A DNA stretch of 62,652 bases, filler included, from Hydrolagus affinis (taxonomy: Eukaryota): NCBI GenBank assembly GCA_012026655.1. It is 3 parts of 3 records of this genome, joined end to end, with 100 filler letters (N's around TTAATTAATTAA, not from the genome) between each part and the next. Parts side by side here need not be neighbours in the genome. Positions count along the whole stretch, not along the records: positions 22,162 to 38,295 come from JAAILG010017187.1; 2 more parts are not named here. The stretch is one strand, 5' to 3'. Below the pieces are notes generated by a model. The model saw only the letters and a program-made list of their open reading frames with translations, ran no database searches and was not told the DNA's origin. Below are positions 22,162 to 38,295 of the stretch, one piece after another. Position numbers and translations under genes: made by a program. The stretch's first letter is position 1. The number at the start of each line of letters is the position of its first letter.

Positions 22162-23829
22162 TTTCAGGCAATGCATTCCAGATTCAAACAACTCGCTGAA
22201 TGAAATTGTTTCTCATTCCCTCTCCTCTGCTTCTATTTGAAACTATTTTAAATCTCTGACCACGAGTCAGTGATTCACCTACCAGTGCAAACTCTTGCCT
22301 CTCTTGCCATTTGTTCAAACATTGTTGGCTGTAATTTCCATCATTACACATAGAATCTCTGCAAAACTTCCTCTATGGCTCCATTTTGCCACTTCCTTCC
22401 CCCTCTTCAGATGACAGCGGCATGGTCACTGTGCAAATGCAGGTAATTTTTGTTCTTGTAGCTTTCGCTGCTGTGTGCCTGGGTTAACAGAATTTGTTTG
22501 ACGAATAGCGCATGGGAGGCTGGTGTAGAAACTCAGTGGGAGACTACGTTCTTTGAATGGTTAGATATGGGGTGTGTTGGGCAGTGCCAAGGGGAGATGC
22601 CTGGTGGATTGTACAGAGTATAAAGTCAGGAAGTGCTGACTAACCTCCATAAAACTTTGGTTAGGCATCAGCTGGAGTAGTATACCTGTTTGACGGGCGA
22701 TGTGACACGTGGGAGGGGATCTGCGCTAGGTCGGAGGTGGTCTAGTACTGCTTGGAGCCCATTTGTGCCTGTTAGGGGGGAGAAGCGATAGGGGGGAGAG
22801 CTGTGTCTGTTTGGAGCCGGGTTCGCTGTGTTTGTTGGGAGGGTAGGCTGTTCGTGGTGGGATTGGGGGTTGGGCCTTGTGGGATGGGAGGCTGTGTCTG
22901 GTGGGAGGCAGGGGGTACTTTCTGGTAGGAATGGATCTGTACCTGTCGTTGTATCTTGTGTTCTGTTGAATGGATGTGCCCCCAGTAGAGAGATTAGCTC
23001 TCAGGTCACCGAGGCCTTGGCCAGTAATGTATTGCTCTGTTTGCTGTCTAACTCTCTGTGTTTATGTACAAATTGTCTAATTCGGAGCTATTGTCTATGC
23101 TAATAGAATGGCAAAATCTGTGTGTATTTGCCAATAACAAAGCAGATTGTTATAGAGCTATTATTTAAACCTCAATGGAAATGTCTTGATGGCGTTAATT
23201 TTATGGACATATTTCGCCCACAAATATCAATTCAGTTCACGTAACAATACAGTCTATTCTTTGAAGCTCACTGAGACGTCTAGAAGATGTAAAAAGCGCT
23301 ATATCAAATGCATATAATAATTGCTATTATTATATGATTTCAGCGATCTCTTATCATTGATCAGATTTAGTTCGAAAAAGTATTTTACAATCGGCTGCAA
23401 TATATGAGGTGAACATGGTATTCAGAAACAAATCATTGATAGAGAAAATTACACACTCTATAAAAATTTAATGTAAAATACAATAGTATAATATAATGTG
23501 GAATTATGTAAAGTATAATGATACAGTATACAGCAACATCGAAATTTTCATTCCATACTGTATCTCTAGGTTGCATATGTAGTTGCTTTGGTCACAGATC
23601 TTAATGGAATAACATGTTACCGCTATTGAGACACATTGAGAGAAATGTGGTCTATATGCCTATACGTCGCCACCATTAAAGTAATTATTATTGTTGTTGT
23701 ATTGTTTACCCGCTAGACGCTTTCTTAATGCGATAGGTGCTCTGGGTATATACATTATATTGTATTAACCTGGTTGACTGGAAATGAAACTGAAAACAGA
23801 CTGTTAATAATGTATATGATATTTTACAG

Positions 23830-24147
23830 GGAATGATAGTGTCAGACTGGTGAATGGAGGTAACCCGTGTGCTGGGACTGTGGAGGTTTACCATGTTGGA
23901 CAATGGGGCACAGTGTATGCCTTTTCCGGCTGGGGTATCGAGGAGGCGGCTGTGGTGTGCAAGGAGCTGGGCTGTGGAGCGCCACGGTCAGCCCCAGGGA
24001 GAGCTCACTATGGGAGAGGGTCAGGTCCCATTGTGACGTTTAATGTTTAGTGCAGAGGGACTGAATCTGCTCTGAGCGAATGTTCCTCACAGACCTGGGC
24101 TCACAACTACTGGTCACAAAACAATGATGTCGGTGTCAGTTGCTCAG
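23830..24147 (+). pseudogene. SRCR domain exon with in-frame TAG
   Basis: VRLVNGGNPCAGTVEVYHVGQWGTVY...EAAVVCKELGCG...YGRGSGPIVTFNV*CRGTESALSEC...DVGVSCS; phase 1-1 exon of 318 nt. Confidence 0.9.
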
Positions 24148-24918
24148 GTAACCAACTCGGTCTCTGATCACCATCTCGTTCTCGGGGAGAGGGAGTGGGT
24201 GTGGGGAAGGAGCGGGTGTGGGGGTGGGAGGCGATGTGCAATGGGTGAGTCGTTGAGCGCAGTGGAGAGGGGAAGTACAGAGTTGGTGTGTGTACAGGGG
24301 AACAAGCACAGGGGGGCACAGCGTGGGGATAATACAGATGTTGATCAAGGAGGTGAGTACAGTTTATTGAAACCGGGGGTGGGGGTGGGGGGGGCGGAGT
24401 GCGTACAGTGGGGAGTAGAGCGGCTGGGAACAGAGGGAGTGAATGAGAAGTTGTTTGTAACTGAGCAAAGGTTAAGGGGGTGGGAGGGTAGATAGTCCTC
24501 AATATAGGAGGAAGGCATTACCACAGGGGAATGGGCTGAGCAAAGGGGTTCACAACGAGAAATTCCATACTAGCTTTCAATATTGCCACGAGATCGTAAA
24601 AAATATGCCTGAATAGGCAGGTGTGATTTAATGACGCACCAGAAGGTCAGCAACACTACAAATGAGGCTGAACGTCCCTGACCTAGAAACTGATATTCAT
24701 CCCCAGCTCACACTGGCCCACAGCTCACAATGACGCCCAGCTCACATTGACCTCCCAGCTCACACTGACACTAGGTTGATAACTGTCCACGTTTTTGCTT
24801 CAGACAGAAACAAATTCTCGGATGGTCGCTAACGTCACTGTTGCTCCTGATGCTCACTTTCATATCACAATCCAGAAAGAATGTTTATGAGGTTACCTCC
24901 ATTGCGTTTTGTTCCCAG

Positions 24919-25203
24919 AACCGCTCCGGATACCCACCCTTTCACTGAAGCCAGATTTCCGTGCGTTTGTGAGAGGGGAGCTCGCTGAGATCTCGTGTTC
25001 TGGCTATTATCCTGGCAGCGAATTTTCTTTGTACAGAGACAGCAGGGTTGTTGCATCAAAGCCAGCTACAGAGAATAACACCACGGTCATATTCACCACA
25101 TCGTAGATCAATGCAGGAAATTACTGGTGTAAATATATTATACGCATTGGCGGCCGAGAGGTCATATCACCACAGAGCGAGCGAGTGAGAATCTCCATCA
25201 CGG
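24919..25203 (+). pseudogene. Ig domain exon 1 (C2/LRC-FcR-like) with in-frame TAG
   Basis: PTLSLKPDFRAFVRGELAEISCSGYYPGSEFSLYR...TS*INAGNYWCKY...SPQSERVRISIT; 285 nt, phase 1-1. Confidence 0.85.
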
Positions 25204-26138
25204 GTAAGAGCAAATGACGGACACTTTTACCAAAGGCCAGTCGTAGCACCCTGGTGATCGGTCACAGCAAGCACTCCGCGCCCACACACAAACAAACCCA
25301 CACCAACTCCATCCATCCACTTATTCCATCAACCTTGTGACACTCCCTCCCAAACTCCATTTCTGACTCCTTCCGTCAATATGTTAGATCCTGCCAACCA
25401 CACAACCTATTATTCCTTCTCTCCCATACCCTCTATTAGTCACTCATTCCAAAAACCTCTATTCCTCCCTTCAAGAGATTCTCTATTGTTAACTCCATCC
25501 TATCCCCACTAGCTGCCCAGCATACAGTACTAGACTTCCTCCTAATGTGAGAGATGCTCTGTATGAATGTAACTTTGTTGCTCTTGTACTATTCCACTAT
25601 CCCACATGCTCTATCCCTTCTTTATATTCTCCCTCCCTCCTTTCCTCACCCTCTATTTCCCACTTCCTGCCACAATTTCATAACCTTTGTTCGTGTATCC
25701 CGACTACACATTCCTTCACAATGCCTCCCTTCCATACATTTTATTCCCCTCTACCTCTTGTGAAGATGTGAATATCTCTTAAATGTATCTAAACTATCTT
25801 ACTCCATCCTCGCTTCAGCCAGTAAGGTGCACCATCTCAATCCTCTCTTCTTCAAATCAGTGCTCCAGCATTCTCTGTTTGGTCCCCTTACTGCGATTTT
25901 ATTGTGATGCTGAAAAACACAACTGGAGATCCACGGGAGATTGAGTCGTACATTCCGTCCGACAGTTTATGACAGTTGATGCCGCGAACCTGCCCCACAA
26001 TCCCTGCCTCTCCCTATCACCCATACATCTCAGAAAGGCAGTGAAACCAGCTGCTGGTCGCTTGTGCTCTGACATGAACCGTGTCCACGTCACGCAGCAA
26101 GTAATTCTGTATTAATCGTTATTGTGTTTTCATTCCAG

Positions 26139-26423
26139 ATTCATTCCAAAGACCCACCGTTTCCCTAAAGCCGGATTTCCGAGTGTTTGTGAGTGGGGAA
26201 AACACTGAAATATCCTGTTCTGGGAACGATCCTTGCAGTAAATTCTCCTTATTCAGAGAGCACGAGCTTATCAGTTCACACCGAGCTCCGGAGAATATCT
26301 TCACTGCCACATTCACCCAATCGGCGATCGTTGCAGGAAATTACTGGTGTAGATATACTACACACATAGAGAGCCGAGAATTCACCTCACCAGAGAGCGA
26401 GCGAGTGGGAATCTTCGTGCGGG
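26139..26423 (+). CDS. Ig domain exon 2 (open frame)
   Basis: PTVSLKPDFRVFVSGENTEISCSG...AGNYWCRY...SPESERVGIFVR; AG/GT flanked, 285 nt. Confidence 0.85.
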
Positions 26424-27676
26424 GTAAGAGTGAGAATCCGGTCACTCTCCAATCTTTTCAATCTCAATCAATAACCTGCTTATGTTTTGATCAGATACGT
26501 CGTGATGTGAAAGGCGCTATACACGGGTAATTTTGTTGTTGTTGTAAGAATAATGCTTGAACTTCTTAGCACTTCGATGAGACAACTCAAATTATTACAA
26601 ATCACAAAGTGGATTGAAAATTTATTTTTGAGTGGAATGCGGCAGCCAATTAGTCAACACAGTCAAACAGGTTTGCAGCTGGTGACCACACTGCTACGGT
26701 TTTGCAGGGGCTCTTATACCCAGAAAAAGGATCTACAGTCCAACTAAGAACCATATTGTTAACTACTGCTAAACAAATAGAGATGCGTGTTGCAAACAAT
26801 CATTGGCAACGTTACCACCCACCACGTAGTCAAACCGAATATGTTTTGTGCTGAGAGAAAGTAGTTGTGGGGGAGAGGGGGCGGAGGAGGGGGCGTAAAA
26901 GGAGGTCACAAACGAAGAGTGGGCGAGTTACCGTGGAGAGATTTCAAATTGACAAATAGGATCGTGGATTAATTCCCCTGGAGCCTGACAGCCCGAATTT
27001 CCAAATTTACATGAAGGATTTTTGCTCACGACAGCTAGACAATTATTTTTCTGTTTCAAACAGAATCACTGGATATTTTGATTTCATGTGAAGAGGATAT
27101 GGGCAGAACTTGGATTTCAAATCTCCCCAAACACATTGTGTATTACTCCCCTCACCCCCAGTGTGACATCAAAGCATCAGCCTTGACTACTAGCTGAAAA
27201 TCGCTGACGTATATTTTGAACCCAGAATCCTCTGAATTAGAGACGAGAGTACAAGTAATAAATAATAATACTTGCATGTTGTTTTAGTGCTTTTCACGAC
27301 TTCTAGCAGACTCAAATCCCTTCAAAGAATGTACTGTGAAGTGAGTTGACTGTACATATGTGTGAGAGCGAAAAACGGCAGCCAATTTCGCAAAACAGCG
27401 TCCCCACACAAAGGAATGAAACAATTTTTATCTTTTTGGTGCGATATTTAATGGCGAGTGTGAGACATTGAGTCAAGCAGAAACAAAATCTCAAAGAATA
27501 TGTATTTAAAAGCGATCGATATATGGTTTAGTCCACATTACTGCCTCTTACCAAACCTCAGATATAAACAGTTTCACAGGCTGGTGCTGGGCTCATTGTC
27601 GCTACCGTTGTTCACTCTCACACCATCGATCACATCGACCTTTTGTGAGATTATCATTACTTTGTATTAATTACAG

Positions 27677-27961
27677 ATCCACTTCAGAAGCCAAACATTT
27701 CCATGAAGCCAGATTCTCAGGTGCCAATGAGAGGAGAACAAACTGAGATCTCGTGTGCTGGGAATTATCCTGGCAGCAATTTCTCTTTATACAGAGCCGG
27801 CGAGTTTGTCACATCACAGCTGGCTCCAGAGAACAACAACGCGTCTGCATTCAACGTATCGGGGACCAGCATAGGAAAGTACTGGTGTCAATATACTACA
27901 AACATAGGCGGACGAGACTTCACATCACCGGAGAGCGAGCGAGTGCGAATCACTGTATCAC
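27677..27961 (+). CDS. Ig domain exon 3 (open frame)
   Basis: KPNISMKPDSQVPMRGEQTEISCAGNYPGSNFSLYR...GKYWCQY...SPESERVRITVS; 285 nt. Confidence 0.85.
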
Positions 27962-28385
27962 GTAAGTACTGAATAAAATTTCAAACAATTACTTGTTTCT
28001 GTTTTAGAAATTTATGAGAGCTCCTGGTATTTTTATGTAATCTCATGGTGTTTGCCCTGTTTGATCCCAAACTCTAACCCCTAAACCTAACCCTAACTCA
28101 AAGGACGGAAAAACATTGCATGATAAAATAGTTTCCAAATCGAAACTCACAAACGATAGCCACACGGTATGTCCGGGTATTAATACTCTCTGCTTTCCGC
28201 ATATAGAGGGGTTCAATTTCCGACTTAATCCTCACCAATATACAATGTAATTTTTCTTTCTGAGACAAGGTTTGCTGACCCCAGATCGAGCTGTTGTACC
28301 ACAGCTGATATTGAACCATAGCAAAATCATGAATTTCCGTCTTTGTTAGCTCTTACAATTGCTGTTTGTCTCTTTCCCTCTCTAG

Positions 28386-28484
28386 GAAAGTCGACATGGA
28401 TACAGATTGGAGGACTTGATGCGGGAATTGTCACGGTGATAGTGATCGCTCTAATTTTCCTGGCCATCTGTGTGTATAGGAGAG
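28386..28484 (+). CDS. Transmembrane exon of the SRCR-Ig receptor
   Basis: RKSTWIQIGGLDAGIVTVIVIALIFLAICVYRR; hydrophobic stretch followed by basic stop-transfer residues; AG/GT flanked. Confidence 0.85.
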
Positions 28485-31400
28485 GTAATTGTCTACTAAT
28501 GACTCTGAGTGTAGAATAGAATTGCACGGAATCAAGTTGGAGCCAGCGGTGCCATTAATCACTTTGTATGGTAGCTCTGGTGCTTCAATGTGTGCTATTG
28601 GGAGCATGAGAACAGAGATACACCAACATAACAACAACTTGAAGTTATATAGAAAGTGCCCCTTGCAGGCTCTCCTCTCAGAGTAAATCAGGGTAGCAGA
28701 GTTTGATTCTGGATATTCTGGTTTACACAGGAACCTGTCTCCCGAGTTAAAACCAATAGTTGATTTTTTACATTTATTACCGGGAGACAATACGCAGCGT
28801 CAAACAAGTATGTATGTGCTTACAGTAACATAATAGGCATTGGTCAGTATTATACTGTGCTTAGCGTGCATGACACTGTCGAGGTTTGTAGGCTGTAGGC
28901 TTGATGTGACAGCAATTTTTGTGATAGTCAATGTTTTCGAGCTGATGTGGTATGACAGTGTTGCTTGAATGTTCAATCCTTTGGTCGATAGCATTTGGTG
29001 AGACTTACAAAGCGAGGACCCGTCTAACGGTTCATGTTGAAGTTAAACATGCTTTGGCTCGATTCGAAAAGAGACGGTAATTTCTCTCTCACAGTTGTCC
29101 TGGCTAACAATCCCACCCATTTTATTGGTCAATTAATTAATAGTAATTTCTGGGACACTTTATTAAGCTAATTAGATGATGTATTTCATTCCCAAGATAC
29201 ATAGTCACCATTTCAGGCTTTGACGCTGGCTCAAATGGAACATAGCTATTAATAAAACCACAAGAATATACAATAAGTACTGATCAATGTTTCATTTTTA
29301 TTACATTTTGTTCTTGCAGCTGAAAAGAACAGTCCAAGTGCAGAAAGGTAAGAATACTTCTACTCTAAACTCTGCTCTCTATCCATCTTACATATATTGT
29401 TGCTCGCCACTTCACTGTACTTCGAAACTCTTATCCCATTTACGTCGCACAACTCACCTCAACGTGTTGGTTTTCGCTCTGTCACTATTCACCAACAGTG
29501 GGATGACAAGGGAGACTCTGGGAGAAGGATTCCGTTCACTCATGTTCAGTTATTTCTGCAAGACAAAGCCCTCAACGGTGGAATTGTCGTAATTCATCAT
29601 TGCTATAAATCTTGCCAGATAGAGTTACTGCCTTAAAGCTATGAGGTTTCGGCTGGTGAGACCCAAGCAGTTATGCCTATGCACAATTTGGAGAAAGCAC
29701 ACACTGCCCCTTCTCACACCGTGCCTTATTCTAATGGTGCATAGGGTGGCAGAGATACTGTATAATCATAACAAACGCAGGAATATACCAATTGTAGCAA
29801 GTGTGACTCGAGCATATCACCACCGTAATGGGTTTTCACACGAAGGACACACCTGGCTTGGACCTACAACACAGCTCCCCGCAAACCCACCCAACATCTC
29901 TAACGCCACTGTCCACAACCTCACCGACCACCCCGCAAATATTTGATGATCTAATTATCAAATTAGGGGAACACATTATAAGACAAGAATAGTCTACTCC
30001 TGTTCTCTTGTTACCCTCTATCCACACCTTAAATAATCATAAATTGAAGTCATCCAAGTCTAGGTAAACACTGTCTACAGATCAGCTCCTCACCACTTCA
30101 CCCATCTGCAAACACACCGCATGTCACCGGAAAAACAGAAACTCTTATATTTTATTTACTTTCTCGAAGTTAGGTAAGGGCTGTGTTGCAAAACCTCCAT
30201 GCTTCTTCCATTTTCCAATTAAAGCAACAAATACAGCGATAAAACAGCTATTACCATTCACTGCCTCGTCCCTGTTCTCCTCTTTCAAAAGTAATCCTCT
30301 CATTACGATTTCCCTCTTATTTCCCCTAGACTAGACACAATAGTTGTTTGTGGCCTCTATGAAAAGGCCAGGCCTCAGATCTGTGGTACTGTTTATGGTA
30401 CGCAGCGGTGAATTCATCACTCTATATTCTTATTTCCCCCCAGGAATTTACCTGAGAGAGGCGGCCCACAATCCAGCAACATCACATTTGAGTGAGAGAT
30501 TTCCTGGATTTGATCGCAGAGGGAAAAAATACTGGTCACATAAAGGCGCCTAGTCAGCCATGTAACTTAGTCCCACAGAACGAGATCGATTGTTCATGAT
30601 CTTCTGTCAGGCTTGAGGCCATTGTTCTCTTAACCTTTCTCTGGTGCTGCCACTCCCTGAAGATCTTCGGCTATCCGTTTGTATATGTGTGTGTGTTTGA
30701 ATGAGTGTCTACAAGTGTGTTTGTCTGTTTGCATGTCTGATTGTGTGTCTGTCCATGTGTCTAACTGTGTATCTGACCATGTGTCTCAATGCGTGTCTGA
30801 CGGTCTGAATGAATTTTACCCACTTCAAGTGTTCTGCCCTTCAGGTGAGATGTGAAAACGTGTGTCCGTCTGGCTCTTTAGTTTCACATTAGACATCTGA
30901 AGTCACTATGCACGAAGGCAATATAATTTTTATAGGTGTCCACTAAATGAATAAAATATGTCATTCACCTTGCCATTCTGTGGCTCACTGTTGTGCCCAA
31001 ACTATATGATTTGAGTCACTCACAATACGAACAATAACTCCATTAAACGGCGTACCCAATGAAACTCTTTGGGATGTCTCGATGAAATGACAAGTCAGTT
31101 AAATTCAGTGCTAAAATTGCAAGTAAACTATTATTTGTCACATGATTATTATTGTAATTTTCATCGGTAATTACAGAATGTACTTATTTATAAGATTAAC
31201 AATGATATTGAATAACGTTGAGTTTCAGCGCCTTGGGACGTCCTCCCGACGTGAAAAGCGCTCTATAAATGTAATTTGTTGTTTGTTGTTAACTGTAATT
31301 CGCTACTACTATACACTGTTTGTTTTTGTTTCAGATGCTTCAGTGAGAATCGTTCCACGCTTGGTGCCTCCAGTGGTGAGTAGAGACAGAATCATTGCTT

Positions 31401-32133
31401 TACGCTGGTTCAGGCCCAGTATGAGCTTAGATGCAGCTCAGCTCAGCCTTACTGTAAGCCTCAGTCGGCTCGTCGCTCAGCAAAATTCATGTCCTATGTC
31501 ACCATCAATTAAATATTGCGCGAGCCAAGCATGTGCCTTGTTTCAGGCTGGCACAGCTCAGCTCAGACGCTGGCTCAGTCAAACTCAGCCAGCAGCACTA
31601 TTGCCTCAGGCAGAAGAGAGTTTTGGGGGGAGACGGAATGTGTTTGTGTGACGTTCCTGTGCATAATTTGGCTGCTGTGTTGGGTTCCCAAGTTCCAACA
31701 GAATCTGGAGAACACTTTATGGCACTGCCAGCAGTTCGCACGACCTCAAATGTCTGCGTGTATACGTGTGTGGCCCTTGCTGCGTGTATAGACCCAGAGT
31801 GCTGGAAGAGTAGGGGTATCAACAACTTCGATTGATATAACGCCCTCCACGTCGGATGGCGTCTAAGAGCGCTTCATAGTAACACGGTGATCAATGGAAT
31901 GGCCGTAGAGGTGGGTCTCCATAATGTCCTTGTAGGAGGCAAGACAAAGCGACAGAGATATGGAATTTCAAACGGTGGATGTTCAAGCCCAAATTCCCAT
32001 ATACATAAACACACACAAATCGCTCACACACATGGTGGTGCTTTGGCTTGGCATCCCAACATGGGTGAGGGTGGGCTTTGGGATTTCCTATTGAAACCCT
32101 AAGCAAATGTGCTGACTGACGTCCTTTTTGCAG

Positions 32134-32238
32134 GACTCTGATGTCAACTACGCCATTCTGACGTTAGGAAACCGGATTGAGAATCGCCGCAAAACCGTTC
32201 CTGATGATGGTACAGTGTACGCCGCAGTCAGGGTGTAG
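32134..32238 (+). CDS. Terminal cytoplasmic exon with ITIM and ITSM-like motifs
   Basis: VNYAIL fits (I/V/L/S)xYxx(L/V) and TVYAAV fits TxYxx(V/I). Preceded by the acceptor CCTTTTTGCAG and ends in TAG. Confidence 0.8.
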   Translation, partial: DSDVNYAILTLGNRIENRRKTVPDDGTVYAAVRV

Positions 32239-34587
32239 CTGTGAGTCCACTGGCCACAATGTGCTCATTGTACTTTCTCTAACTCCCATGGACACATGCC
32301 ATCAATACCAGCTTCAGTCTGACCACAATTAGAAGATTCCATCAATTGTTTCTCCGACAAAGATGAGCTGAGAATGACTGAGACTGAGTGAGGTAGGGTG
32401 AAAGAGAGACTGAGAGATACAGACTGTGTGCGAGAGACAGAGACTGGGTGAGAGAAAAAAAGCTGAGAGGAAGAGAGTCTGTGAGAAAATGGAAATGTGT
32501 AGGATGTGCGAAATAGAGAGAAAGATGGAGAGAGATTCAGAGTAATATCGTGCAGGAGAGACGCAGAATGATGGAGAAGCATTGAGATAGATTGGGTGTG
32601 ATTCCGGTCTCCTGGATCTACAAAAACTCTTGTTTTATGCAACGATCCATTCTACTCTTCCCCCGATCACCCCATCCGACCTGACCTACAAATGTGCAAA
32701 GCCGTTGATTCGCAAATGTTTTATGTCCATGACCATTCATCAGTTATAACTGCTTGACTCCGCTTTCAGTCAGCTTAATCCCTCCCCACCCCACAACCTA
32801 TAGCTACCACTCCCAGCCTTTTTGCCCAACGGGCAGTAACGAGCACTTTAAGTAGTCCTTCCAATGTGAAAAGGAGTTGCGTAACTATTTTTTTCTGGAA
32901 TGGGAACACAAAGATTTTGGCTTCTATGACATTTCCCAAATACTGAAACCGACTGGAAGCAGCCAAAAGATTGGACAACCCTTGCTTAAAATATACTGTT
33001 ATTTCAGTCAGTAATGCTTGTTAATTAACTGACCTTTTGAGTGACAATCTTGATTAGATATTGTTTTGTTGACAAGGCGAATGTTGCTATTCACAACGGA
33101 ATCTGCACACGAATGATCTGTATTAGCTGTTTCAGAATAATCCGAATTCCACATTTAAGCATGATGTTTTTTACAGTGTAATTGGTATAGCTTTAGATGA
33201 AGGGTTCTGGATAAATGAAAATGCGTTTGTCTCAGACTTACATTGATCAGAACTAAAAATGTGTTTATTACAGTGGTTGCTGTGTTGGCATTTGATGTAT
33301 TGGGCTGTGTTTTTAAATCACAATTGGTTGATGGGAACCGTGCCCTATCGATTCCTGCTGTAAAGCCACTATACTAACACGCTCAAACCGATTGCCATAA
33401 ACTTTACTAACCTGCCATAAGCATTACGCTGATTTGATGTAATGTATTATGCATGAGCGTGCAATTATTTTGATTAAATTTTGCTGCATAGAACTTGTGT
33501 CCGTTCATTTTTCGTGGAAAGCTCACGAACTCCAATCAGGGTCCAACATTGGCGGTTTCCATTGTGGCTAAACCAGCATGGAAAACGGTTTTCGGAGTGA
33601 GAACGTGTGAGTCAAAGGGACAATGCCAACAATGCCCTGCGTGTACACCCTCTTCATACCTCTCCCGCGCACATCAGCCCACAGACCTCCCTCCTCATTA
33701 TTGACACTGCTCCCCAACCCCGCACCCTCCACCACCACAACAATAGAGAGTATAGATTACAATATAATCTAAAGTATAGAGAAACATTTGCTGCTTGAAC
33801 ACGTCAGTTGTGGATTCTGATGAAACCTAAGGAATAATTAGCAGCTCATTCTGGGCACCGAAACAAGCACAATATGTCTAATTAATAATAATAATCCATG
33901 AATTTGATATCACGCTTTAAACATCATATCGGCGTCCCAAATTGCTTCCAGAATGTACTGTAAAGTGCATTGGCTGTATATCTGTGGGAGAATCGCGACA
34001 GCCAATTGCGCACAGTGGTGTCCCACAAGCAGTCGTTGAATGAAATTACCATTTTTTTTATTATTGTGTTTTTATTGGACGGATTATCATTATGCGTGTG
34101 GAGCAAGGAAACTTGCCCAAGGTTTCACCCTGGCCTCCTTGCATTCGAACACATGTCTCATGTTTAATGTCTGCTGCGTTTTTCTAGAATTCCATGACTC
34201 TGATTTTGTTGCCAGTTCAGTACAAGAAGAGAGTTCCACCCCCAAGGTGGTTGAGCTTGGTTTGGGCAATCCAGGTTGAAGCACTGGGAAACCTTTGCAG
34301 ACAGTGCTTCCAATAGGAACTTGCTTATTTAGATGGTTATAATCCATATTTTAACATCACACAGTCTTGACAATTTACTTTATACCGTCTGTAATCGGAT
34401 GGTTAGATGCTTTTTTCCAGCGAGAGAAAGAGCACATTCAATTCCAATAGGTGGAAAATCCCATATTGAGGTGGATTGCACAGAATCATCAGAGATTTGT
34501 TTAGATTTTCTTAATCTATCAATTTAAATGGTTCCCAAATCCAGGCAGATAGGCATTGACCCGATGGTCTGCAGTACAATCATATCT

Positions 34588-36022
34588 CCACCAGGTGGCG
34601 GTGATCCACTGCATTCCCAATTTGTTTTCACAATACAACACCTCCCCTGTGGCTGAATGCGATATTACAGCTCCAACTTAATTTTCTTCACATATTATTA
34701 ATTTTGCAAGAACAACACATAAAAAATCTGGGTTTATTGAGCCCCAATGATGTACAATCACGTTTTGAGTATCAAATCAGTGTTGTCTTATCAATGTCCA
34801 ATACATTTTCATTACTTGTCAGTGTTTATGTAACTAAAAATTTCCCCATTGAATCCAATGATACTACTTGTATTAATTGTAAAAAAAAAAGCAAAATTCT
34901 CTCGCCATTCCACGAATCTTTGCAAAACCCTGCTGGTTGCAATTCTCTGACGTGTCTCACTTACAAATATACAACTGATTCACTTTCGAGTAAATTATGT
35001 GAGCTTCCCATCAGATATATGGACTTTTCCAGCACGGACTCGAAGGGCCGAATGGCCTCCTTTTGTGCCGTAAGACTCTATATCTAGAGGATGTGGAAAC
35101 AGTTATATCAAATGCAATGATTATTGTTATTCCTTCACGCCTCAGGTCTGTATTACACTATCAAATTCTAGACAGCACTCAAGCAGAGAAAAGAAATCCC
35201 TTTTCAATATCTCTCCTGATTATATTGTGCATTTGTGGAGTACAATCATTTACTGTCAGTTATTGTGTTTTCAAATTAACGATAAAAACCTTTAGTCCCA
35301 AATTATTAACGCCAGATGGCGTCGATGCACTGTGTACCTCCGCACAGTTTTCTCATTCAAATCTCTTGTTCTTTGTTAGCGGAGAAGAGAAAGAACCTCC
35401 AGAGCCGATGTGTAGGTTACTAACAAATTGTCAGAATTCTTCGCAGTTTCCAATCACCCGCAACGGTCTCTAATCTGTTTTCTGATCGAGACATGTCAGG
35501 CAGACAGTTATTTGTGGAGGACAGGTTTGTGCGTTTATAATAATAATAAAATAATAATAATCTTTGCATTTGATATAGCGCTTTTCACATCTTATTGAGT
35601 CTTAAAGCGCTTCACAAAAAATACAATCAAGTGAATTGAATATATATTTGAGGGCGAAATGCGGCAGCCAATTGCTCGCAGCAATCTCCCACAAACATGC
35701 GTGGATTGAAATGACCAATTTTATTGCTATGCTTATTTTTGGAGGCATTAATGTTATTCGTACGGAGTAAGGAAACTTGTCCAAGATTTCGCCGTGATCT
35801 GCCTGGATTCGTTAATAGGTATTACTGTTACAGCTAGAAGAGTTATGGAGAAAGAGGTGAGAAGTGTGAATGGATTGCTCTTTTCAAAGAGCCAGCATAG
35901 TCTCGATGGGCCGAATGGCCTCCTTTTGTGCCGCAAGATTATATGATTCTATGATTCTGTGATTGTGTGATCAAACTAACGATAAAAATCTGCTGTACCG
36001 CTTTAATACCGCTAGATGGTGA
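34588..36022 (+). promoter_or_regulatory. Cluster of three co-oriented CTCF-like motifs
   Basis: CCACCAGGTGGCGG (34588-34601), ACGCCAGATGGCGT (35309-35322) and CCGCTAGATGGTGA (36009-36022), compared by eye with the core CCASYAGRKGGCRS. Confidence 0.5.
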
Positions 36023-37090
36023 CGATGCGCCGTATAACTGCTCACAGTGTTCGAAGTAAATTCCTTGCCTCCTTGAGTGGAGAACAGAATGTCTGACCAG
36101 ACCTGATGTGTATCTTGGTAACACATTGACAAAATTCATTGCAGGTCTAGCGTTCTCACTGCTGATGAAACGCAGCCCAGCCTGGCTCACCTGCAGGAAT
36201 TTGAAGGGCAGCCCAACACAAAACTGAGAGACCTTCACGATTTCCCTTCTGCCAGCAATCCGTTGGCCGTCGGATCTGCAGTCTATATCCTTGCTTGCTT
36301 GAAATCAACCAAGGAGATATCCTGTAGTTTATCGGTTCAGGCGCTTGCCTCTTAAGAAGATCTTTGGTCTTGACAGCTCGTGTTCTTCTCCCACATGGCA
36401 TTGACCCCGCCTATATCTGAACCGCCGTCTCTATTTCAGCCTGCCTGTGCACTCCGTTCAGCGAGCTCTGGCCTGCTTTATGTCTCCGCTGAACCGCCCT
36501 AACATCAGTTGCCGGCTTTCAGCCTCTCTGCCCCCACATTCTGGAACTCAGTCCCACATTCCCTTCGCCTCGCTTCTTCATTTTCTCCCTTCAATTCCGT
36601 TCTCAAGAGCTTCCACTTCGACCGTGCCTTTTGCCCCCATTTCTATCTCTTCCCCGTCTTCTACTCTCCTTCCCTCGGCTCTAGCCCCAACCCTTCAGCC
36701 CTGCTCGGTTCCCGACCAAGGATGCTGAGCGTCTTGGGACGTCCTCTCGATATCAAAGGCGCTCTTTTCGTGTAATTTCGATGTTGCTGTGGTGGTCACC
36801 TTTCCAGCAGGGGGAAATATTGGGTATGTTTTCTTCATCCACAAATATGCCGCTGTTTTACCAGCAGTAAGTAAGAACCGTGATGATAGTCGATTAACGA
36901 ATGAATTCCGCACAACCCAACATACAGGAAGTGAGATTTCAGTGAGTGCGTCACCCAGAATATAGTCATATCATGCACAGTTTAAAAAGAAACGTTCGGC
37001 AAACATTGATAAACGCTTATAAGTCTTTACATGACTTCCCGTTTAATTTTATAGACAGATTTTCACTTGAGTCGACGTGGATTATTAAGA

Positions 37091-37549
37091 ATGAAGCCAC
37101 GTTTCACCGCATTGTATATCATTTTTAATTTAATGATTCTGTTCTCCTGTAAGTAGAGGATGAGCTTGGACAAACACATCCCTGTTTACTTATTACCTAA
37201 TTATGAATTTTTTTTGCAGATATTTTCCGACATTCTTTCCAAGAATGTTCATTTCTATTGCCCCAGGTGTCCTCGCTGAAAGCGGAGTGTCACAGAGACC
37301 TCCATTAATGAAAGAGAATGAAAATGGAAATGTAACCACGGATTGCATCACCGCTTTGAAGGTAGACTACTTTCAATGGTACAAACAGTATGGAAACGGC
37401 TCCATCGATTTGCTGGTGAAGGGAAGCAGAGAGATCAAGGTGGAGAAGAGGATAAGTGCTTTGGCTGATACAAAAGTGAAGAACAGCACACTGACAATCA
37501 GAGACGTGAGGGTGACAGACACCGCCACTTACTTCTGTGCAGCAGAGAG
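37091..37549 (+). CDS. TRAV: T-cell receptor alpha/delta-type variable gene segment, unrearranged and apparently functional; leader exon 37091-37148, V exon 37267-37549
   Basis: Leader MKPRFTALYIIFNLMILFS with GTAAGT donor and a 118-nt intron. V exon GVSQRPP...NVTTDC...YFQWYKQY...NSTLTIRDVRVTDTATYFCAAES has the conserved Cys, Trp and YFC and an open frame. Alpha versus delta cannot be resolved by eye. Confidence 0.85.
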
Positions 37550-37588
37550 CACAGTGCTGCGTATCTAAGAGGAACCTGTACAAAAACA
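37550..37588 (+). other. 23-bp-spacer recombination signal sequence (23-RSS)
   Basis: Heptamer CACAGTG (37550-37556, consensus), 23-nt spacer CTGCGTATCTAAGAGGAACCTGT, nonamer ACAAAAACA (37580-37588, 8/9 match to ACAAAAACC). Confidence 0.95.
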
Positions 37589-38295
37589 TGCTGAAGTTAC
37601 TGTAGCTCAATGGTTAAAGCACTCGCTTCACAAACGATAGGACTGCTGGTTCGCATCCCAGCAGGCCAAAAACTCGGCCATTGTTTTCTAACACCACATG
37701 CTTCTGACTACAAAGGAGTAAATGGGAATCAGGTTGTTACTCCAATGGTGGATCGCCTTTCAGCGTGTGATAATTCCTAATTAAAATGATCACTTCAATC
37801 CGCAACATTTGATGGGACACTGCTGTGTGAAGTTATTTGCCGCCTTTATCCCATTATACATACAGTAAACTCACTGCAGAGTATAAACAGGGAAGCGCTC
37901 TTGGACGTCTCGAGTACGTTATAAGTCGCTACACCAAATGGATAGATTCTTAGTATTATTGCCGATGTGTAAATAGGGACCGAGTTAATAGTCGATTTGC
38001 ATATCGCCTTTTCCAGAATGATAGTCCATTGAAAAAGCATTGCCACTTGATAACAAGAACAACAAAAACAACTTCTAATTCACTTGCGTGCTCCACGCCG
38101 GACGGCGCCTAAGAGCGCTCAGATACGCTTTAAATTCTACGCAGCAGTGACACACAAATAGGTGTGAATTGAGTTACTTATTTAATAACAGAATATTTCC
38201 ACTGGAAAGTAACCACTAATCGACTAATAACCAAATTCCTACTTGCTGGTAGCTCAACGGTTCTCAACCATGGGTACATATATCCCACGGGTTGG

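Follow-up and report, generated by a model that had tools for sequence, protein, structure and literature searches.

The question raised by this locus is whether the chimaera Hydrolagus affinis carries a working receptor in which an SRCR domain is joined to immunoglobulin (Ig) domains, a transmembrane (TM) segment and an inhibitory cytoplasmic tail. The window, that is, the whole stretch of DNA analysed (62,652 nucleotides of assembly GCA_012026655.1), holds the gene in question in its piece 22162-38295 (JAAILG010017187.1), which is vertebrate DNA with about 36-50% G+C and interspersed repeats. The initial annotation had proposed a hybrid inhibitory receptor at this locus, and our analysis found the SRCR exon, three Ig exons of 285 nt, a TM exon and a tail with the motifs VNYAIL and TVYAAV at the places it had given, with the stop confirmed at 32238. 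The proposed inhibitory architecture holds for a family whose members combine SRCR, Ig, TM and a tail with inhibitory motifs of the immunoreceptor tyrosine-based kind (ITIMs), but not for a working gene at this locus, where the copy carries two nonsense codons and has lost a splice donor. Overall, the copy is disabled, and the likeliest reading, to which we assign a probability of roughly 0.7, is a pseudogene that was inactivated recently, or else a null allele, within an SRCR-Ig-TM-ITIM receptor family of chimaeras.

Three-frame translation and inspection of exon boundaries, with homology used for the small tail exons, gave a gene model of 10 exons on the plus strand, including one unverified candidate leader. 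The joined exons form a conceptual coding sequence of 1551 nt that is in frame to the final stop but for two internal TAG codons. The SRCR exon (23830-24147, 318 nt) matches Pfam SRCR (PF00530) on both sides of the first TAG, with E values of 1.2e-13 and 6.9e-06, and the presence of the SRCR fold signature in a single exon is a trait of group B. The first TAG lies at 24048-24050 (codon 94), just before the fifth conserved cysteine, where the collinear paralogue in Callorhinchus milii has CGG (arginine). The second lies at 25104-25106 (codon 189), in Ig exon 1 (24919-25203) ahead of the second cysteine of that domain, and the paralogues have GAT or GAG at this position. Ig exon 2 (26139-26423), which is up to 64% identical to paralogue Ig domains, and Ig exon 3 (27677-27961) are open. 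The three Ig exons, each of 285 nt, share 71-73% identity in DNA and about 52-57% in protein, and were matched by Pfam Ig_2, Ig_3 and Ig_C19orf38, all three of which hit Ig exon 3. The stalk and TM exon (28386-28484, 99 nt) is 45-53% identical to paralogue TM segments and encodes a hydrophobic core with no basic residue. Phase 1-1 is common to the SRCR, Ig and TM exons, and these five exons and the last exon are bounded by AG and GT.

The phase 1 end of the TM exon cannot be joined directly to the phase 0 start of the last exon, and further exons must lie between them. Three such exons, absent from the initial annotation, were identified. The mini-exon CY0 (29320-29347, 28 nt, phase 1 to 2) has intact AG and GT and was recognised by its 78% homology in DNA to L001, the paralogue locus, where its equivalent encodes KQNSPRGE. 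In exon CY1 (30444-30487, 44 nt), RNLPERGGPQSSNIT was aligned to paralogue RNVPTGGGPEPSNVT by tblastn; its donor is TT in the window as against GT in L001. Exon CY2 (31335-31375, 41 nt, phase 1 to 0), with AG and GTGAGT intact, is homologous to a paralogue exon encoding ..VR..PR.VPP. The final base of CY1 together with CY2 would build the tyrosine codon of a third motif, ITYASV, and the loss of the CY1 donor therefore removes this motif, the first in the tail. A direct join of TM to CY2 is in frame, and such a join occurs in models P0042, P0006 and P0065. The last coding exon (32134-32238, 105 nt, 47-56% identity to paralogue tails) encodes ..DSDVNYAILTLGNRIENRRKTVPDDGTVYAAVRV followed by the stop, and thus an ITIM and a canonical immunoreceptor tyrosine-based switch motif (ITSM) with 23 residues between the tyrosines. 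VNYAIL and TVYAAV agree with the patterns [SIVL]xYxx[ILV] and TxYxx[VI] and are placed as in the paralogues. The TM, CY0, CY1, CY2 and last exons are homologous to those of the paralogues and of L001, as found by tblastn and DNA alignment.

The CY1 donor is also of interest in intact paralogues. Several of their RefSeq isoforms (P0151, P0003 and P0160) end in ..SNVTCE-stop (L001 29802-29860); here the frame simply runs on through the CY1 donor (ACAT/GTGAGTGA), and the resulting isoforms would have neither tail nor ITIM. In the window the corresponding read-through, ..SNITFE-stop, would be obligatory if CY1 is included, because the donor has been lost.

The least secure part of the model is its start. 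The exon at 22422-22482 (61 nt), which had been annotated as the signal peptide, consists of an ATG and a hydrophobic 20-codon open reading frame (ORF) that closes in phase 1; its donor, GTTAAC, is weak. The exon does not resemble the leaders of the family (M..LF.IFVI.LERK.VESA type) and has no RNA reads, and it stands as a candidate leader. In the one paralogue locus inspected, about 4.8 kb separates the SRCR exon from the leader exon upstream of it, a distance that in the window would reach past the left end of the piece; the true leader of the window copy may lie there.

A functional member would have an open frame and usable splice sites, and here the frame is broken by TAG twice and a donor is replaced by TT. 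The two nonsense codons and the lost CY1 donor make it most likely that the copy is a pseudogene or a null allele. Several observations weigh on the other side. Apart from the three lesions there are no frameshifts, the other splice sites are canonical and all domain cysteines are present. Between the window copy and the paralogue, the ratio of nonsynonymous to synonymous substitution (Ka/Ks) is 0.39-0.93, and the paralogue's own Ig exons, compared with one another, fall into the same range (0.65-0.80), so that long neutral decay is not visible and Ka/Ks does not date the inactivation. The TAG codons are those of the assembly, and an assembly error or a polymorphic null allele may lie behind them. 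Skipping of the SRCR and Ig1 exons would give an intact receptor with two Ig domains, since all ectodomain exons are of phase 1. The tissue of the available RNA is unstated, so the lack of reads from the copy is weak evidence, and splicing of SRCR to Ig in the family is predicted by RefSeq and Ensembl-derived models.

Two of these observations lead to explanations of their own. According to the first, the gene is intact in life, and the TAG codons and the TT donor are errors of assembly or sequencing, or mark one null haplotype of a polymorphic functional gene with SRCR, three Ig domains and ITIMs. The remaining coding sequence of about 1.5 kb is excellently preserved with Ka/Ks below 1, null alleles occur commonly among KIR and LILR genes, and clusters of multigene immune receptors are generally difficult to assemble. 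However, base errors arising at random are an improbable source of three independent lesions in one gene of a modern assembly, two positions separate the SRCR TAG from the paralogue CGG, and no RNA read of at least 99% likeness over the exons was found in three runs. We consider this explanation unlikely.

The second explanation is that the gene works as a shorter receptor in which the SRCR and Ig1 exons are skipped pseudoexons, leaving a two-Ig inhibitory receptor made of leader, Ig2, Ig3, TM, CY2 and the last exon, whose motifs are VNYAIL and TVYAAV. Exon 3 of human KIR2DL1-3 is skipped as a pseudoexon in this manner. The skipped form keeps an open frame of 291 codons, the Ig2, Ig3, TM, CY2 and last exons are intact with canonical splice sites, and C. 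milii members with no SRCR domain and one or two Ig domains (P0006, P0050 and P0065) provide a precedent for it. The SRCR and Ig1 exons nevertheless retain perfect AG and GT and the sequence gives no reason for skipping; the three RNA runs showed neither a joint of leader to Ig2 nor clean reads of Ig2 or Ig3, and the leader exon this form would need is the unverified one. A working two-Ig receptor is improbable, and a recently inactivated pseudogene or null allele is the reading we retain. The window copy itself adds little beyond the birth-and-death turnover typical of such families.

The RNA evidence came from three paired-end 101-nt runs, made in the study that also gave the best-matching DNA run, aligned to 22300-28299 at a likeness of at least 90%. 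None of the indexed RNA runs contains the window exons, and only three single-cell runs of the same study are listed. Nearly all reads fit partly, at 90-95% likeness, with pile-ups on repeats resembling short interspersed elements (SINE-like repeats), and the exons were thinly covered (a depth of up to about 11 for SRCR and about 11 for Ig3). This partial fit and the consistent base differences indicate that the reads come from paralogues and repeats. No joints of leader to SRCR, SRCR to Ig1 or leader to Ig2 were listed for these runs over this interval; a transcript joining SRCR to Ig1, which the initial annotation had named as a check, was therefore not obtained. A few back-joints of two reads each, in which an Ig exon's end is linked to the start of a different Ig exon, agree with the tandem-Ig junctions of paralogue mRNAs. 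The window locus is without transcript support in the three runs over 22300-28299.

The absence of a transcript joining SRCR to Ig at the locus would also agree with a third explanation, in which SRCR and Ig exons stand in different transcription units and the hybrid would arise, as an artefact, from reading neighbours together; automatic models in such clusters do sometimes fuse neighbours, as in P0256 with its TRIM-type domains. Against this, Ig1 begins 771 bp downstream of the SRCR exon, with the two on the same strand and in matching phase, and the same order and spacing recur in the collinear locus L001. Many independent models on different contigs (RefSeq, Ensembl/UniProt and older builds) place SRCR directly before Ig, and the same succession is found in ray and teleost models. 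Separate units are the least likely of the rival explanations and can be set aside as very improbable.

The receptor family was examined by an exhaustive profile search with Ig3, which returned 477 proteins, the closest (52-64%) all from C. milii; 31 family representatives were then examined, and P0151, a paralogue, served as the query for full-length searches. Every relative above 50% identity that was looked up or bore a name was a C. milii model (RefSeq, Ensembl/UniProt or older builds). The window copy, with its Ig exons of exactly 285 nt, is 52-66% identical to these close relatives. The window SRCR is 60-66% identical in amino acids to C. milii paralogue SRCRs over the whole exon and 68-71% over its first part. 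Word-based protein searches with Ig3 and with the V exon described below found nothing closer than 60%, and no relative of the receptor copy above about 66% was found; the copy is therefore a divergent member, or its species is one related to C. milii.

A search for SRCR, Ig and TM together in chondrichthyan proteins, as the initial annotation had suggested, was productive: 17 of the 31 C. milii representatives join one to three SRCR domains to one to four Ig domains, and ray models also show the combination. Family members overall are type I membrane receptors. Their SRCR domains, N-terminal and group-B-like, number one to three; these are followed by one to seven C2 Ig domains, near-identical and of the type found in FCRL and leukocyte receptor complex (LRC) receptors, a TM segment and a tail with two or three tyrosine motifs (ITIM/ITSM). 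Most models that reach the C-terminus carry the TM, and about nine carry a tail with VTYATV, IIYANL and P(V/I)YATVRV. The layout of the window copy is matched exactly by XP_042201399.1 (leader, SRCR, three Ig, TM), whose locus, L001, runs parallel to the window gene in exon order between the SRCR exon and the 3' end, being collinear at 66-80% DNA identity, intron segments included.

Comparison of the window copy with C. milii models (XP_042201399.1, named 'alpha-1B-glycoprotein-like'; XP_042201732.1, 'DMBT1-like'; LOC103191288 and LOC103172721) revealed a shared order of SRCR, repeated Ig, TM and a tail of the form ..Y..L ... VYA.VRV, the same six-cysteine SRCR, the same exon structure with the CY0-CY2 mini-exons, and 52-66% amino acid identity per domain. 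The C. milii models are open frames, whereas the window copy has its two TAG codons and lost donor. The ITSM of the window is of the canonical form TxYxxV, whereas the C. milii paralogues have PxYATV, with tails ending in ..IIYANL..PVYATVRV.

Cysteine patterns set the family SRCR apart. In the window copy and in P0151, P0154 and P0051 the domain has six cysteines, in place of the eight of group B; C1-C4, C3-C8 and C5-C6 are kept, C2-C7 is missing (WGTVC, HNC), and there is an insertion of four to five residues after WGTV. This six-cysteine pattern differs from the classical group A and group B patterns. Canonical eight-cysteine SRCRs flank a family-type Ig domain in the C. milii model P0053. 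The tree of Ig domains is an unresolved star with many tandem pairs from within one gene, and it assigns no positional subtype to Ig1-3; the window Ig domains are on long terminal branches (0.60-0.72 as against a median of 0.34).

Among the C. milii members, P0035 and P0229 have an arginine within the TM and a short tail. Arginine in the TM with a short tail is the hallmark of activating partners, and these two models look like activating-type members. The intact and activating-type paralogues that the initial annotation had suggested seeking are thus both represented among the C. milii predictions. Taken together, the SRCR-Ig-TM-ITIM family is real and present in RefSeq and UniProt under automatic names, and it is apparently undescribed. 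The earlier description of the family as poorly described stands in so far as no paper on a fish or shark SRCR-Ig-ITIM family was found in the open-access literature; it does not extend to the databases, where members are already deposited.

About 5 kb beyond the receptor gene on its downstream side lies the only neighbouring gene in the 16-kb piece, a germline V segment (37091-37588, plus strand) that is apparently functional as judged from its sequence. It comprises a leader exon (37091-37148), a V exon ending in ..DTATYFCAAE (37267-37549), the heptamer CACAGTG (37550-37556), a 23-nt spacer and the nonamer ACAAAAACA (37580-37588), all on the plus strand. The best solved-structure matches of the V exon are mostly T-cell receptor (TCR) alpha V domains, alongside a few constructs of antibody V domains. 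It may be, therefore, that the receptor copy lies in or beside a V region of the TCR alpha/delta type.

SINE-like repeats were found at 23213-23333, 26500-26550, 27247-27411, 31226-31294, 33883-34159, 35539-35807 and 37600-37700, and they also occur many times in L001 of C. milii at 70-92% identity. The first three draw thousands of partly fitting RNA reads. The last has a tRNA-like head, yet ARAGORN reported no tRNA there, and no tRNA genes were found in the piece. The intron after the SRCR exon is G-rich on the plus strand at 24150-24500 (GC skew up to +0.36, runs like GGGGTGGGG), and this gives long spurious ORFs on both strands. The remaining scanned ORFs of at least 100 codons in the piece had no Pfam match.

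Beyond C. milii, the next-closest Ig relatives are 30-36% identical, and several of them, from sawfish, electric ray and teleosts, begin with SRCR followed by Ig and TM. Such predictions were found in Pristis (P0008, XP_051864824.1), Narcine (P0004, XP_069783103.1), Epinephelus (P0014, XP_049417209.1), Collichthys (P0030), Clarias (P0184 and P0261), Ameiurus (P0235) and carp (P0258), under the automatic names DMBT1-like, IGSF1-like or uncharacterised, and with up to 18 FCRL/LRC-like Ig domains. Because rays and teleosts have predicted SRCR-Ig proteins, the combination is not lineage-specific, a restriction that the initial annotation had considered possible. The ray and teleost models share a leader, one or more N-terminal SRCRs, related Ig domains and a TM with the chimaera family. 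They differ in having SRCRs of the canonical eight-cysteine type, many more Ig domains in rays, and tails that are short or of an acidic YxN type, in contrast to the VxYAxL / TxYAxV tail of the chimaera family. Only the ITIM tail type and the six-cysteine SRCR are particular to the chimaera family.

The predicted proteins point to a widespread, unstudied class of SRCR-Ig receptors in fishes. An earlier survey reported that sharks have no homologues of FcRL or LRC receptors of C2 type (PMC4016189), a statement that the database models, as predictions, contradict for cartilaginous fish. A further reading is that receptors with an N-terminal SRCR, FCRL/LRC-type Ig domains and a TM are an ancient inheritance of jawed vertebrates, common to chimaeras, rays and teleosts, that Holocephali already had paired inhibitory and activating forms, and that the mammalian CD5L/FCRL neighbourhood and FCRLS are the remnant or the re-creation of this combination. 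At present this reading is doubtful; if true, it would overturn the statement of that survey on cartilaginous fish.

As to function, motif and domain homology suggest that intact members would bind ligand through the SRCR/Ig ectodomain. Phosphorylation of the tail tyrosines would then recruit SHP-1, SHP-2 or SHIP and damp activating signals, as predicted from the motifs, and members with arginine in the TM and a short tail may act as adaptor-coupled activating partners. Paired Ig-like receptors such as KIR, LILR, FCRL and LITR have a central part in regulating both innate and adaptive immune cells, and how they arose before the bony fishes is unclear. The chimaera genome has a sizeable family of paired receptors of this kind, with ITIM tails and apparent activating-type partners. 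Many members are tipped with SRCR, so that a module of the pattern-recognition type is coupled directly to what would be inhibitory signalling. This opens the early history of FCRL/LRC receptors, and the part that exon shuffling played in it, to direct tests.

Among known systems, the window SRCR is nearest to CD163, PIT54, CD5L, CD6 and DMBT1. A specific CD5L-like origin was considered and not adopted, as DMBT1 scores better per domain (about 82 bits for one domain) than CD5L (146 bits over three). The SRCR receptors CD163, WC1/SCART, CD5, CD6 and CD5L/DMBT1 resemble the window gene in that each SRCR is encoded by one exon and stands N-terminal on a type I membrane protein. To our knowledge, none of them has Ig domains of FCRL/LRC type. 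Compared with the SRCR-B leukocyte receptors, the window SRCR has lost the C2-C7 pair and gained the short insertion after WGTV.

The premise that FCRL receptors lack SRCR domains does not hold for FCRLS: PMC7940838 describes this mammalian protein as a chimera of Ig and type B SRCR domains, calls it unique in that respect, and presents it as having no TM and being apparently soluble. FCRLS is thus like the window gene in combining FCRL-type Ig and a type B SRCR in one protein. It arose in eutherians next to CD5L, has no ITIM and is not an orthologue of the window gene. The SRCR of FCRLS is C-terminal. In the window gene the SRCR is the first ectodomain exon and is followed by a TM exon and ITIMs, in contrast to the apparently soluble FCRLS without TM. 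Clusters pairing SRCR with Ig are also present in the Atlas.

For the Ig region, the nearest solved structures (phmmer, PDB) are FCRL5, PIR-B, LILRB2, OSCAR, KIR3DL1 and NKp46, and the Atlas neighbours are IGSF1, A1BG, KIR3DX1, LILR and OSCAR. LILRB, KIR-L, PIR-B, FCRL1-6 and the teleost LITRs share with the chimaera family C2 Ig domains of the same superfamily, each encoded by one exon of phase 1. The inhibitory LRC/FCRL receptors further share tandem ITIM/ITSM motifs with 23 residues between the tyrosines, and paired activating forms with arginine in the TM. We know of no SRCR domain in any of these receptors. In the chimaera family the Ig domains are of one near-identical type that duplicates within genes, whereas LRC/FCRL receptors have distinct D1, D2 and D3 domains.

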